Positions 1,142 to 11,780 of a DNA stretch of 64,000 nt are shown one piece after another. The stretch's first letter is position 1, and each line of letters begins with the position of its first letter. A program made the translations under genes and the position numbers. The notes beneath the pieces are model-generated. The model was not told where the DNA came from, did no database searches, and worked only from the letters and a program-made list of their open reading frames with translations. The stretch lies in the sequence record JN849462.1, one strand, 5' to 3'.

Positions 1142-1293
1142 ATATTTTAAATGTGCGCTACTTGCACGCCGACTGAGCGAATTTTAACTCAGCTAGTTTT
1201 TGTTTGAGACATCGTCCGCTAAGACTATTCTCTGCATGCCAGAACTTATACTGGCTCTATGTATTCATTTCGGCTAACGCACATTTAAAATAT
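1142..1293 (-). ncRNA. Candidate structured ncRNA of about 150 nt
   Basis: Perfect 16-bp terminal inverted repeat (1142-1157/1278-1293), GCCGA/TCGGC inner stem, and hairpins CTGAG/CTCAG (1173-1192) and GCCAG/CTGGC (1238-1255). Confidence 0.65.
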
Positions 1294-1294
1294 T

Positions 1295-1399
1295 ACTCAT
1301 CTTCAGAGAAGAGACAGAAACGATGAGTCTAGTCTGTTTAATCAATGTTGTTCATCTTCAAGAAGAGGCGAGAACGATGAACTTAGCTCGCTTAATCAA
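1295..1399 (-). repeat. Two tandem units of about 50 nt (1295-1345, 1350-1399), each a predicted pseudoknot
   Basis: Shared invariant segments (TTGATTAA, TCATCGTT, TCTTC, GAAGATGA) with compensatory changes in two interleaved stems. Confidence 0.75.
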
Positions 1400-1407
1400 C
1401 TGTGTTA

Positions 1408-1435
1408 ATCTTATCAGCTTCTCAGCGAAAGTCAA
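1408..1435 (-). promoter_or_regulatory. Sigma70-type promoter for the tRNA cluster (downstream promoter)
   Basis: TTGACT-N16-TAAGAT with an upstream A-tract. Confidence 0.65.
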
Positions 1436-1499
1436 CATCTTTTTCAAATATTTCATCGAGTTGAAAGTTTGTTTTCTGTCTCTCGACTCGATGAAATAC

Positions 1500-1527
1500 A
1501 TTCTACATCCTTTTCAGATGAAGTCAA
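1500..1527 (-). promoter_or_regulatory. Sigma70-type promoter for the tRNA cluster (upstream promoter)
   Basis: TTGACT-N16-TAGAAT with an upstream A-tract; followed by a 13-bp perfect hairpin (1449-1461/1486-1498). Confidence 0.65.
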
Positions 1528-1543
1528 CAACTATTTTAACTTT

Positions 1544-1798
1544 TTAAACGGAAATGATAATGCCGCTTTCAGTCTCACCTCGTTCAAGCGCAGCGTGCTT
1601 GATCTGAAGTTGTGATACTGCTTGCTGAAGTTCAATAATAGCTTTGTCATAAAGCTTGTTGTTCTCTTTAAGCAAAGCAATCTGATCGGTCTGCATACCA
1701 ATGATGTACGTTAGTAGAACAACGTTCTCATCAGTCGTCAGCGTTTCAGGCGCTTCATTGTACTTCTTCAGCACCGCTTCGGTAGATAGATCAGTCAT
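1544..1798 (-). CDS. Hypothetical coiled-coil protein (84 aa)
   Basis: ORF whose ATG overlaps the 57B stop (ATGA coupling); heptad-like C-terminal half. Confidence 0.7.
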   Translation of the reverse strand: MTDLSTEAVLKKYNEAPETLTTDENVVLLTYIIGMQTDQIALLKENNKLYDKAIIELQQAVSQLQIKHAALERGETESGIIISV

Positions 1799-2246
1799 TA
1801 TTAGCAACCCATTCTAGATCTAATGGTTCGATATATTCATCGACAAGGCGAACCTCTGTATTGATGAACATAGGGGTGATTACGTCGTCATAAGACAATG
1901 TGACGTGCGGAGTATAGTCAGGGTAATCGTGAGTACCACCGATAGAGATAAGGTCTTCGTGACGTTCTACAAGAGCAGGACATGACATCTTAGCAACGAC
2001 CGCGTGTTTACCGTCTTGCGTTTTCCAACAGTCAACTTGTTCAACAGTGGCAACGAAAGTGGTATCTACAACGGGCACATCAATTTGCTTACGACTATAA
2101 AGCACAGTCACGTGGAATTTATCGGGATCTAACGGATTTTTTAGACGAAGCGTTTTTTGCAAGCGAACTAGTTCTTGCTTACTTGCTTCGTCTAATTTGA
2201 TACCAACGTAAGTTCCCTGACTCTCAAGGAACTTAGATAGTTTCAT
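1791..2246 (-). CDS. 57B: gp57B-like 2H phosphoesterase (Acb1 anti-CBASS family)
   Basis: Two HxT motifs (FHVTVLYS, PHVTLSY); WKTQDG, THDYPDYTPH and EYIEPLDLEW match recalled T4 gp57B; syntenic with 57A and 1. Confidence 0.85.
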   Translation of the reverse strand: MKLSKFLESQGTYVGIKLDEASKQELVRLQKTLRLKNPLDPDKFHVTVLYSRKQIDVPVVDTTFVATVEQVDCWKTQDGKHAVVAKMSCPALVERHEDLISIGGTHDYPDYTPHVTLSYDDVITPMFINTEVRLVDEYIEPLDLEWVANND

Positions 2247-8789: not shown

Positions 8790-9929
8790 ATGGGATTTTT
8801 AAGTTACGTCGGTCTTAGCGGAAAACAAAGTGATACTCTTGATCGTGTACTGTCTTTTGATGGAGGCGTTGAAAGTAGTACAACTGAGATTACCCAAGAC
8901 ACAGATCAGGGCAGAGTTAGCACGTCTAATATAGTTGCACTGACATATCCGCCCAATCTTGGCGCGAGATCTGGACACTCGAACTTTTTTATTTTTCGAG
9001 CGTATGACTTGGCTAGCACAACAAAGCAACATTACACTGACATGCGGCAGTCATTCACAGCATCATCGAAAGAATCTAAGCAGGCGTCTGAAATTCCTAG
9101 TGAGTTGATGGCGACTATGGCTCTTTACGCGCCAAACTTAGTTGAAGAAGTTTCGCATGAATATGACAAAACACCGACTTCAGTTTTGAATGACTTCTTA
9201 GCCGCTGCCGCTACAGCAGCCGGTGCAGATACTGTTTCTCAGGGTGTAGAAGCGGGTAAGAAAGCCGTATCAACCGCAGCCGGTGCTACGTTAGCACAGA
9301 TCAAGCGTTCGTTCATTCAATCAAATGCTGCCGGTCAGCTTGAGAAGAACAGCAGCGTAGTTACGGATAACGTTACTGTAACTGCGTACAAAGGGACCGC
9401 TCAACGTCAGCAAACATTGATGTATCAATTTCACCCTAAATCACTAGATGAACTGAAGATCGTCGGTGAGGTCATCAAAACATTCTATCGACTTTCTCTA
9501 CCAGTGAAAGGTCAGATTAGTTCTGATTTGCTAGATACTGGTAATGCTGCATTAGGTTCAGGGTTTTCAAATGGCTTTGCGAAGTATGCAACGCTATTGA
9601 AGACGCCGCCAGTGTGGATGATTGAAGAAGTTTCAGATGTTGACGCGACACGATACACCCCGAGATTCGTTTTCGGACCCGCGGGTATCACGTCAGTGAA
9701 ATTAAACAGAACACCAGATCAGTATTGGCGCACATTTCGCGGTACAGCAGGCGACCCAGCAGGCATTGAACTTGAAGTAACATTCACTGAGCTTATCCCT
9801 ATGGATCGTGCAATGTACGAGCGAGATCAAGCAAGTAGCATTCGTGGTTACGACAACGGTACCACTACTGCAAGTGGTAACAGTAATGATTCTGGTTCAT
9901 TCTTTGGTGATATTGGGAGTTTATTCTAA
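8790..9929 (+). CDS. 48: gp48 baseplate tail-tube cap
   Basis: PPVWMIE, FGPAGITSVKLNRTP and LEVTFTEL match gp48. Confidence 0.75.
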   Translation: MGFLSYVGLSGKQSDTLDRVLSFDGGVESSTTEITQDTDQGRVSTSNIVALTYPPNLGARSGHSNFFIFRAYDLASTTKQHYTDMRQSFTASSKESKQASEIPSELMATMALYAPNLVEEVSHEYDKTPTSVLNDFLAAAATAAGADTVSQGVEAGKKAVSTAAGATLAQIKRSFIQSNAAGQLEKNSSVVTDNVTVTAYKGTAQRQQTLMYQFHPKSLDELKIVGEVIKTFYRLSLPVKGQISSDLLDTGNAALGSGFSNGFAKYATLLKTPPVWMIEEVSDVDATRYTPRFVFGPAGITSVKLNRTPDQYWRTFRGTAGDPAGIELEVTFTELIPMDRAMYERDQASSIRGYDNGTTTASGNSNDSGSFFGDIGSLF

Positions 9930-10507
9930 TGATTTTCGCGATATTTGACAAGACTGAATATCTTGGTGTTGAGACTGCGAATATTTTCAAGAATTTGAAT
10001 TATTATCATAAGCAGATCATCCCATCATTCACGACTATTCAGTACAAAATCAGGGGCGACTATCGCCCTGAACAGATTGCATATGAACTGTATGGCGATA
10101 CGTCGTTATACTGGTTGATTATGCTTCTAAACGAACGAGTTGACCCTTTTTATGATTGGGTTCAGCCCAACGAATCGGTTTCTGAGAACGCTATTTATCG
10201 TTATCAGTTTATTGGCGGCAACGAGCAAGTTCATCATCACGTAGATGAGCAAGGTCGATGGTGGTATGACGTGGTCGAAGACCCAGAAAATCCTCGAAAT
10301 TGGTACAATAAATTCGATTGGGAAAACAACGCGCCTGAAGAAGGGCAGGAAGATTATCGTGAGCTTCTATATCACGGCGTGATGATCCCTGTTTCCGTTG
10401 ACGAATATGAATTCAACCGAAACGAAGAAAATCGCGTAATCAATGTACTATCGAGGGATGATGTTAGTACATACATTAGCACATTCATGAAATTAGCAGG
10501 GGTATAA
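9929..10507 (+). CDS. 53: gp53 baseplate wedge protein
   Basis: RPEQIAYELYG..LYWLIMLLN...DPFYDW LysM-like motif. Confidence 0.88.
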   Translation: MIFAIFDKTEYLGVETANIFKNLNYYHKQIIPSFTTIQYKIRGDYRPEQIAYELYGDTSLYWLIMLLNERVDPFYDWVQPNESVSENAIYRYQFIGGNEQVHHHVDEQGRWWYDVVEDPENPRNWYNKFDWENNAPEEGQEDYRELLYHGVMIPVSVDEYEFNRNEENRVINVLSRDDVSTYISTFMKLAGV

Positions 10508-10508
10508 C

Positions 10509-11780
10509 ATGTTTGAAATGCGCTCCGCTAACCCAATTGAGAACTTTGTGGTTAGCAAGATTCACATACGCGGTCTTGATTTTGCAGCGTCGGTGGAGAA
10601 TGAAATCACACACATGGAAATTTATGAATCGCTTAACGGGTTGGTTTCTGGCATGTTCATGTTCAAGGATTCGGTTGGCGTCGTTGACACAATTAGAATG
10701 ACTGGATTTGAAGCAATTGACGTTGAATTTGCGTCGTATGTCGGGGAGCAAGCAAATCGAGTCTATCAAAAATCATTTCGTGCAACGGGTATTTCTAGAA
10801 TGCCCGCACGTACTGGTGGTTTTGAGACTGTATTGGTGCGTTTCACAAATAACTTACTGACTCTTAACGATTACGTTAAAAGACCTTATGTATTCAAGAA
10901 GACTAGTATTTCGAATATCATAAAATCTATTTTGGATAATCTAGGCGATGAGAAGCCAAAATATGAAATTGAAACGTCGTTATATCAACGTGATTTTGTG
11001 ACTAAGATCGGTAAACCGTACGACATCATCCAAAGCATCGTCGATCATGCTAGTACAGACGTGAATAACAGTTGTAAATTCATGTTCTATGAAGATCGCG
11101 ACTCAGTTAAATTCGCATCACTCGGGTCAATTCGTGACAAAGAATACGAATACATCATCCGTAAAGGTGCTGATACTGGCGATGGTAAATGGACATCAGG
11201 TAATACGAATACAATCACAGCATTGCGAGTTGTGGTGAAAGAACAATCTAATATGCACGAGATTTCTAGTGGTTTATTCGGGTCTAGAACATATTCTCAT
11301 AGTTTAATTCGGAAGAAATTGACTACAAAAGATGTTCGTAGAAATGATTATATCGCGCAAGTTGGTATTTTGAATGACCGCGCTCATATGTACACGAATG
11401 AACTTGAGTTTGCAAGTGAAGTTCCTGAAACTGAACAGCCATTGAACAGTATTCAGCTACTACCAAACGATGGTTTTTACGAGCATGACAACAAACACCC
11501 ACTAGGGTCTATTCACGGCGTATCTCTTATGGAAGAGACGTATTTGAAGGCTAAGCAGATCATCGTTGAAATACCCGGGAACACTAACATCACGGTTGGT
11601 GACGTTGTATTTCTTGATTATCACGCGGTGACTGGTGAGAATCATTCTAGTTTAGACGCATCGGGTCGTTGGATTGTTCATGAGTTGAAGCACCGTGTTG
11701 AACCCAACTCATTTATAACTACTCTTGAATTGTCTAGTGATTCATCGGTTAATATCGCAATTGCGGGGAGCAAGAAATAA
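10509..11780 (+). CDS. 27: gp27 baseplate hub
   Basis: EIYESL, FMFYEDRD and IPGNTNITVGD motifs; precedes gp5. Confidence 0.7.
   Translation: MFEMRSANPIENFVVSKIHIRGLDFAASVENEITHMEIYESLNGLVSGMFMFKDSVGVVDTIRMTGFEAIDVEFASYVGEQANRVYQKSFRATGISRMPARTGGFETVLVRFTNNLLTLNDYVKRPYVFKKTSISNIIKSILDNLGDEKPKYEIETSLYQRDFVTKIGKPYDIIQSIVDHASTDVNNSCKFMFYEDRDSVKFASLGSIRDKEYEYIIRKGADTGDGKWTSGNTNTITALRVVVKEQSNMHEISSGLFGSRTYSHSLIRKKLTTKDVRRNDYIAQVGILNDRAHMYTNELEFASEVPETEQPLNSIQLLPNDGFYEHDNKHPLGSIHGVSLMEETYLKAKQIIVEIPGNTNITVGDVVFLDYHAVTGENHSSLDASGRWIVHELKHRVEPNSFITTLELSSDSSVNIAIAGSKK

Follow-up and report, generated by a model that had tools for sequence, protein, structure and literature searches.

The transfer RNA (tRNA) region of the vibriophage KVP40 is headed by a tandem RNA element that we regard, from the pattern of sequence change among its relatives, as a near-certain case of a selected three-stem H-type pseudoknot. 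The element lies on the minus strand at positions 1295-1399 of a 64,000-nucleotide (nt) stretch of sequence record JN849462.1 (the window, whose numbering is used throughout). It comprises two units of ~54 nt, each of which combines two interleaved helices, P1 of 5 base pairs (bp) and P2 of 5-7 bp, with a small hairpin. Over its first 2400 bases the window shows 100% identity to Vibrio phages KVP40 and phi-pp2, which are classified as Straboviridae, Schizotequatrovirus and have Vibrio hosts; positions convert to those of the KVP40 record by adding 180715.

Read 5' to 3' on the minus strand, unit 1 (1350-1399) opens with the flank UUGAUUAA (1399-1392) and continues with P1a (GCGAG, 1391-1387), loop 1 (CUAA, 1386-1383), P2a (GUUCAUC, 1382-1376), the triplet GUU (1375-1373), P1b (CUCGC, 1372-1368) and a single C (1367). 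The hairpin (1366-1355), with arms UCUUC (1366-1362) and GAAGA (1359-1355) enclosing UU (1361-1360), then leads into P2b (GAUGAAC, 1356-1350). Unit 2 (1295-1345) follows the same plan: the flank UUGAUUAA (1345-1338), P1a (ACAGA, 1337-1333), loop 1 (CUAG, 1332-1329), P2a (ACUCAUC, 1328-1322), GUU (1321-1319), P1b (UCUGU, 1318-1314), C (1313), a hairpin (1312-1300) of UCUUC (1312-1308), UCU (1307-1305) and GAAGA (1304-1300), and P2b (GAUGAGU, 1301-1295). A preliminary description of this DNA, made from the letters without database searches, had proposed this layout, and its coordinates and bases proved exact. Tandem Repeats Finder delimits the array as 1297-1412, with a period of 54 and 2.1 copies.

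The two units are 71% identical to each other and differ at 15 aligned positions. Twelve of these fall in P1 or P2, where they make up six double changes that preserve pairing (four in P1 and two in P2), the same compensatory pairs that the preliminary description had counted. There is no one-sided stem change between the units, only 3 of 23 unpaired aligned columns differ, and the hairpin is the same in both. A UCUUC/GAAGA hairpin had also been claimed for each unit; it is present in both, but its 3' arm shares 2 nt with P2b, so that either P2 has 7 bp and the hairpin is very short, or P2 has 5 bp and stacks on a hairpin of 4-5 bp. With 5 bp the hairpin of unit 1 would be left with a loop of 2 nt, and its realistic form is therefore 4 bp with a 4-nt loop. 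The lengths of the loops (4 nt, 3 nt, and C plus hairpin) look sterically feasible for P1 and P2 forming together. Minimum-free-energy folding of the units is unremarkable (z-scores of -0.5 and +0.2), but these nested-fold scores carry no weight either way because the method (ViennaRNA) cannot score pseudoknots. It is evolution, not thermodynamics, that supports the pseudoknot.

Each of 50 vibriophage records contains one copy of a 431-nt region, at 75-100% identity, and 17 of these records, KVP40 and 16 related vibriophages, entered the orthologue alignment. The orthologues contribute four independent compensatory events together with G-U wobbles, all of them lineage-specific changes that keep pairing. 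The last P1 pair of unit 1 is G-C in the KVP40 and phiST2 clades and A-U, with both sides changed, in nt-1, CZ01, D480, K566, D482 and F86. The first P1 pair of unit 2 is A-U in most phages, G-C in phiST2, ValKK3 and VH7D, and G-U in 1.081.O, while in the D480 clade two P2 pairs of unit 2 are altered on both sides. The closing pair of the hairpin is C-G or U-G across orthologues. Phage 1.081.O has one unit only, in which P1 resembles that of unit 2 and P2 that of unit 1.

Pairing was quantified over 18 distinct units (alignment A3, which includes a marine unit described below) and 267 pair cells. Standard pairs fill 99.6% of these cells, and sliding the partners by 1-3 columns reduces this to 36-49%. 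Both P1 (columns 10-14 with 30-34) and P2 (columns 20-24 with 49-53) are 100% paired, with double changes at four of five and three of five pairs, respectively, and none of 500 shuffles reached the observed covariation score. The helices thus interleave in the order a-b-a'-b' and both covary, as is characteristic of an H-type pseudoknot. The hairpin stem shows no covariation although P1 and P2 covary, and 26 columns are invariant among the 18 units. These results agree with the selected RNA fold that had been proposed from the two copies. Loss of the interleaved pairing in homologues, which the preliminary description had named as evidence that would tell against such a fold, is seen neither in the 16 related vibriophages nor in the marine lineage. 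The corresponding covariance model scores unit 1 at 69 bits and unit 2 at 82.6 bits. Neither the 64-kb window nor the marine loci yielded another, diverged copy with covariance model R1, and a pattern free of stem demands except for one P1b base found no third copy in the complete KVP40 contig of IMG/VR.

The same alignment identifies the strand. On the minus strand 266 of 267 cells are paired versus 258 of 267 on the complement, where eight G-U pairs become mismatches, and this points to the minus-strand RNA as the selected molecule. It would be almost certainly wrong to explain the element at another level, namely as a DNA repeat of protein-binding sites, as part of a plus-strand open reading frame (ORF), or as chance. 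Some GenBank records do place a hypothetical plus-strand ORF over the region (KVP40.0320, 1323-1547), opposite the pseudoknots as well as both promoters and the hairpin described below. However, this ORF varies in length from record to record or is absent, has no family match and is probably not a gene. At least 10 pair-preserving double changes without disruption are beyond chance, and G-U pairs read as A-C mismatches on the other strand. Mini-ORFs starting from the AUG inside GAAGAUGA were likewise rejected, as neither the D480 clade nor the marine unit has this AUG.

To look beyond the vibriophages, metagenomes and GTDB were scanned with a stem-agnostic invariant core in an exact-pattern search, followed by a filter for P1 and P2 pairing. 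There were 107 core matches, three of which passed the filter, and all three represent one lineage. They lie on mutually near-identical contigs, two from Tara Oceans and one of 75 kb binned as a Chloroflexota metagenome-assembled genome. This last contig is the only occurrence of the core with P1/P2 pairing in the exact-pattern scan of 185,579 bacterial and archaeal species genomes in GTDB, and is probably mis-binned. The proteins of the marine contigs are nearly all orphans, with a DUF4942 protein and a NinI-like phosphatase as the sole matches; no protein similarity to KVP40-like phages was detected, and the contigs are taken to be an unclassified phage-like element. Their pseudoknot is a single copy with new stems, in which P1 position 4 and P2 position 2 have a different pair type, while the flank, loop 1, the AUC-GUU junction and the hairpin are as in KVP40. 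It occupies L186 10309-10362 on the minus strand, with a structured RNA of ~130 nt on one side and, on the other, an intact tRNA-Asn(GUU) gene that starts 8 nt after P2b.

A further RNA-like feature is common to both groups. BLAST with the marine locus recovered a 95-nt element with a T-arm-like hairpin, at ~80% identity, in the marine contigs and in phages phiST2, ValKK3, VH1_2019 and PVA8 (L186 ~9864-9958, minus strand; L007 ~2243-2345; L017 ~2267-2370). In the four phages it stands directly upstream of an interrupted tRNA-Asn-like gene, and at the same place KVP40 and phi-pp2 carry interrupted tRNA-like gene 3 in lieu of it. The element has no match in Rfam at E<=0.01 (L007, L017) or E<=0.1 (L186). 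The pseudoknot, tRNA-Asn and the T-arm element therefore co-occur in two lineages. Searches of IMG/VR did not extend the family. With a loose core pattern, the best 'paired' matches among the matches listed belong to a conserved coding region, not RNA; a second pattern returned an unrelated coding region plus KVP40 and VH7D only, and two further patterns gave no additional units. The ORF neighboring the marine unit has no relatives in IMG/VR and one protein cluster elsewhere, on a contig that ends inside tRNA-Asn. On the marine contigs the stretch 5' of the knot contains repeated units of ~200 nt (L186 ~10400-10950, minus strand; L256 1333-2616), in which a promoter-like TTGTAT..TATAAT pair, a short RNA and a hairpin with a T-rich run can be seen by eye; a consensus scan of the minus strand of this repeat stretch called none of the by-eye sites and 0 terminator-like sites. 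A related contig has an IS605-type TnpB gene inserted nearby.

In the window, the pseudoknots belong to a predicted transcription unit with two near-consensus, early-type promoters identified by a promoter scan. The upstream sigma70-type promoter (1500-1527, minus strand) consists of TTGACT, a 16-nt spacer and TAGAAT, with 10 of 12 consensus matches and both hexamers invariant in the 17 phages. Its transcripts are predicted to read through a 5'-terminal hairpin, the second promoter and the pseudoknots. The hairpin (inverted repeat I2, 1449-1498, minus strand) has 19-nt arms and a 12-nt loop, and is conserved with a mean column identity of 0.94 and minus-strand G-U wobbles in D480 and 1.081.O; transcripts from the upstream promoter are predicted to begin with it. 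A perfect 11-nt complementarity between its loop and the P1b region of unit 2 (1310-1320, pair I4) was rejected as a functional feature, as changes in phiST2, D480 and F86 are uncompensated. The second sigma70-type promoter (1408-1435, minus strand) has an extended -10 and consists of TTGACT (1435-1430), a 16-nt spacer, TG (1416-1415) and TAAGAT (1413-1408). Across the 17 phages its -35 is invariant and its -10 is kept in 16. Its start is predicted near 1401, which would make unit 1 the first element transcribed from it; this agrees with the earlier placement of the repeat at the head of the tRNA region and first behind the downstream promoter.

The next module of this unit is a structured RNA of ~150 nt (1144-1293, minus strand), with a closing stem of ~23 bp around three hairpins. 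It has a fold z-score of -5.5 and no match in Rfam; of the 42 pairs in its alifold consensus, 22 show compensatory changes across 11 phages. VH7D and R10Z lack 63 nt of this RNA and retain both pseudoknots. Four tRNA-like genes with anticodon-loop inserts of 45-60 nt follow on the minus strand (~1003-1127, ~612-736, 386-498 and 255-375). Two of them are recognized by the Rfam tRNA model (55.5 and 51.9 bits, with inserts of 49 and 45 nt) and none by ARAGORN, and GenBank lists the genes as pseudo-tRNA or as tRNA-OTHER, Phe or Asn; ordinary tRNA genes lie beyond the start of the window. In the Asn-like gene (GUU, with the insert immediately 3' of the anticodon), gene and insert are conserved in six phages and the insert hairpin covaries; in D480 and K566 a C replaces the U before GUU. 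Despite the pseudo-tRNA label, this conservation argues that the interrupted tRNA-like genes are functional RNAs. In phage TCU-VP03-AIR1 (L018 2193-2846) a homing endonuclease gene lies inside the tRNA-like region downstream of the pseudoknots, which are intact.

This arrangement is relevant to the idea that the knot acts in cis on its own precursor, by marking or insulating processing sites, by protecting RNA ends, or as a put-type antiterminator that binds RNA polymerase. We consider such a role doubtful, though a real contender. The knot is always found within ncRNA/tRNA precursors (ncRNA, non-coding RNA) whose modules are separated by linkers of 5-12 nt, in KVP40-like phages transcription from a conserved promoter would reach it first, and in the marine lineage it is 8 nt from tRNA-Asn. 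A universal host machine, whether an RNase or RNA polymerase, would also account for identical loops in unrelated lineages. However, neither the distance to the promoter nor the immediate neighbors are kept between the two lineages, the nearest tRNA-like gene of KVP40 is ~170 nt off, behind another RNA, and a mere roadblock needs no invariant loop bases. Processing by RNase P faces an additional objection. One report indicates that cleavage of a pseudoknot substrate by this enzyme, which occurs in loop 1, depends on a 3' RCCA (PMC12710915), and the bases 3' of P2b are AACA in unit 1, AAUA in unit 2 and ACUU in the marine unit. With no RCCA in any of the three, an RNase P substrate or tRNA-like acceptor mimic is unlikely.

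On the minus strand the gene order is gene 3, gene 1, the tail-fiber chaperone gene, 57B and the small ORF KVP40.0321, and then the non-coding stretch with the pseudoknots, which precedes a tRNA region of 9 kb. Gene 57B (1791-2246, minus strand) is labeled 'RNA ligase' in RefSeq; its Pfam match is PF23474 (E 1.7e-46), which is Acb1, a phosphodiesterase directed against the cyclic oligonucleotide-based antiphage signaling system (CBASS), and its matches to 2H-phosphoesterases are merely weak. The RefSeq label was accordingly dropped as a pointer to tRNA splicing. The RNA cluster thus begins two genes after an anti-defense gene, and the neighbors of the pseudoknots in KVP40 are Acb1, two small hypothetical ORFs and ncRNAs. 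Annotation, Pfam and PADLOC reveal no toxin-like ORF near the pseudoknots, and PADLOC gave no match of any kind.

Known RNA families were compared through Rfam 15 (4227 models, E<=10), with a 2-kb stretch and, using the most permissive filters, with a 131-nt stretch alone. Apart from a sub-threshold alignment to transfer-messenger RNA (tmRNA), no family matches the pseudoknot units at this cutoff. That alignment (RF00023, 12.5 and 9.3 bits versus a gathering score of 47) places both units at model positions ~174-299, in the region of PK2-PK4, which is likewise a head-to-tail string of H-type pseudoknots. The phage units have no tRNA-like domain or tag reading frame and ARAGORN found no tmRNA, so the resemblance is architectural only. 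Phages are also known to carry structured RNAs beside their tRNA genes, such as the T4 species 1 and 2 RNAs and the GOLLD and ROOL RNAs, which are co-transcribed with these genes and whose function is unknown. These RNAs differ from the KVP40 units in being much larger and having other folds, and none of their Rfam models matches the window. Another parallel is the leader of gene 32 in T4-type phages, where a small H-type pseudoknot, followed by A/U-rich sequence, acts by binding protein (PMC3014915). The gene 32 element is also a small H-type pseudoknot in a T4-related phage, but it is a translational operator in a messenger RNA leader, whereas the KVP40 unit stands in an untranslated tRNA/ncRNA cluster. 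We found no earlier mention of this pseudoknot in the literature. As far as Rfam 15 and the literature show, the fold is undescribed, although its kind is known from small H-type pseudoknot RNAs and from structured RNAs that accompany phage tRNA genes.

The preliminary description had offered two functional hypotheses and proposed a covariance-model search against antitoxin, preQ1 and ribozyme families; none of these matches at E<=10. Its first hypothesis was a mimic of a type III antitoxin, which would neutralize a host endoribonuclease of the ToxN, CptN or TenpN type. Such antitoxins (ToxI, CptI, TenpI) and phage pseudo-ToxI share short tandem pseudoknot units with the ~50-nt units of KVP40, phage pseudo-antitoxins do exist, and the phage RNA could conceivably neutralize a host protein. 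We nevertheless find this hypothesis highly improbable. The KVP40 units are just 71% identical with differing stems rather than near-identical, no toxin gene is adjacent or cognate, and no described type III antitoxin family is matched in sequence or by model. A single unit is enough in two lineages (1.081.O and the marine one), and the motif is embedded in a tRNA/ncRNA precursor and conserved across the whole phage group, which describes an old feature and not an escape locus. As the core with pairing is absent from the 185,579 species genomes by exact pattern, there appears to be no host antitoxin to mimic.

The second hypothesis, a ligand-binding aptamer resembling class II preQ1 riboswitches, fails as family membership. 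The preQ1-II fold is of the HLout type with helices P1-P4 and a length of ~77 nt or more, its P3 sequesters the Shine-Dalgarno sequence upstream of queT, and it is restricted to Bacillota (PMC11625349). The KVP40 unit shares with it a pseudoknot with an embedded extra hairpin, conserved junction bases and covarying stems, in a phage that makes 7-deazaguanine precursors. It differs in being H-type, with three helices, a hairpin in loop 3, a length of ~50 nt and Vibrio hosts; downstream lie ncRNAs without an ORF or Shine-Dalgarno sequence, and model RF01054 does not match at E<=10. There is a broader version in which the knot is a small-molecule aptamer without a classical expression platform, serving as a sensor or sponge for a 7-deazaguanine (preQ0/preQ1) or a nucleotide signal. 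Covarying stems around junctions that do not vary are the classic mark of an aptamer, tandem aptamers are known, and the neighboring gene acb1 degrades nucleotide signals. KVP40, phi-pp2, nt-1 and relatives encode DpdA2 and preQ0 synthesis genes (PMC6884629), yet the DNA of nt-1 is little modified (just 0.02-0.11% of G residues). This version is quite unlikely given that no riboswitch family matches even the 131-nt stretch alone, that no terminator, Shine-Dalgarno sequence or ORF lies downstream, and that the pseudoknot is not adjacent to any que gene, with no que-family match among the scanned marine ORFs (10 on L186 and 5 on L238).

It is also very unlikely that the knot is a small self-cleaving ribozyme of a new type, cutting the precursor at unit borders. 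Its size, its conservation pattern and its place between RNA modules that need separation would all fit, and the helix order partly recalls that of nested double-pseudoknot ribozymes. However, none of the known self-cleaving families in Rfam is matched (hammerhead, hepatitis delta virus-like, twister, twister-sister, pistol, hatchet and hairpin), and the hairpin runs into P2b without a junction where a catalytic base could sit.

We tentatively favor a role in trans, in which the knot is a protein-binding decoy or ligand RNA of an early program of counter-defense and tRNA supply, excised from the tRNA/ncRNA precursor. The mechanism as a whole is a weakly supported best guess. The precursor would be cut at the short A/U-rich linkers, as the neighboring tRNAs, tRNA-like RNAs and structured RNAs must be, and the units would accumulate as small stable RNAs, the second tandem copy serving dosage. 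The invariant bases comprise the UAA that precedes P1, loop 1, the AUC-GUU junction and the UCUU/GAAGAU hairpin; the rigid knot would display them to one specific partner, probably a protein that handles tRNA or other RNA, and act on it in trans. Several features point in this direction. In KVP40-like phages the knot comes after a promoter and before the 150-nt RNA, and in the marine lineage it lies between a structured RNA and tRNA-Asn; since neighbors and promoter distance differ and a single copy suffices, its behavior is that of a self-contained module and not of the leader of one RNA. The invariant bases, including a hairpin stem that never covaries, suggest one specific partner. Early promoters, the acb1 neighbor and the counter-defense role of phage tRNAs lead to the decoy reading, and phage tRNA genes as counter-defense tools are documented in three reports (PMC10264068, PMC11464382, PMC11555353).

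Several points weigh against this proposal. We found no KVP40 transcriptome paper in the literature, and excision and stability of the units are assumed. The family is tiny (KVP40-like phages and one marine lineage), so the statistics of context are weak, and the argument from the acb1/tRNA neighborhood is guilt by association only. An aptamer or ribozyme would fit the same pattern of conservation, and a position directly after a promoter suits a cis-acting element too.

A narrower proposal, which we judge unlikely, is that the element is a counter-defense RNA module that moves with tRNA-Asn among unrelated marine phages. The exposed invariant C-GUU junction contains the triplet of the tRNA-Asn anticodon, and C-GUU also appears in the interrupted tRNA-Asn-like gene of some relatives. 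The junction might trap an enzyme acting on position 34 of tRNAs with GUN anticodons, such as a defense nuclease or a member of the transglycosylase family; alternatively, the knot might soak up a small signaling or 7-deazapurine ligand.

The genome of KVP40, a reference among T4-related phages, was published in 2003, and the head of its tRNA region proves to hold a chain of conserved and undescribed RNAs. In this chain the tandem pseudoknot is followed by the 150-nt RNA, in which 22 pairs covary, and by the tRNA-like genes, whose anticodon-loop inserts are conserved. The evidence for the pseudoknot is unusually clean for such a small family. Its recurrence with new stems and identical loops beside tRNA-Asn, in a lineage that shares no detectable proteins with these phages, suggests a portable function with a link to tRNA biology. 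Were the partner a defense protein or signal molecule, the knot would represent a new class of RNA counter-defense; were it a host processing enzyme or RNA polymerase, the knot would be a cis signal of a new type for phage operons that are not translated. In both cases the knot offers a small and concrete target for probing and structural work.

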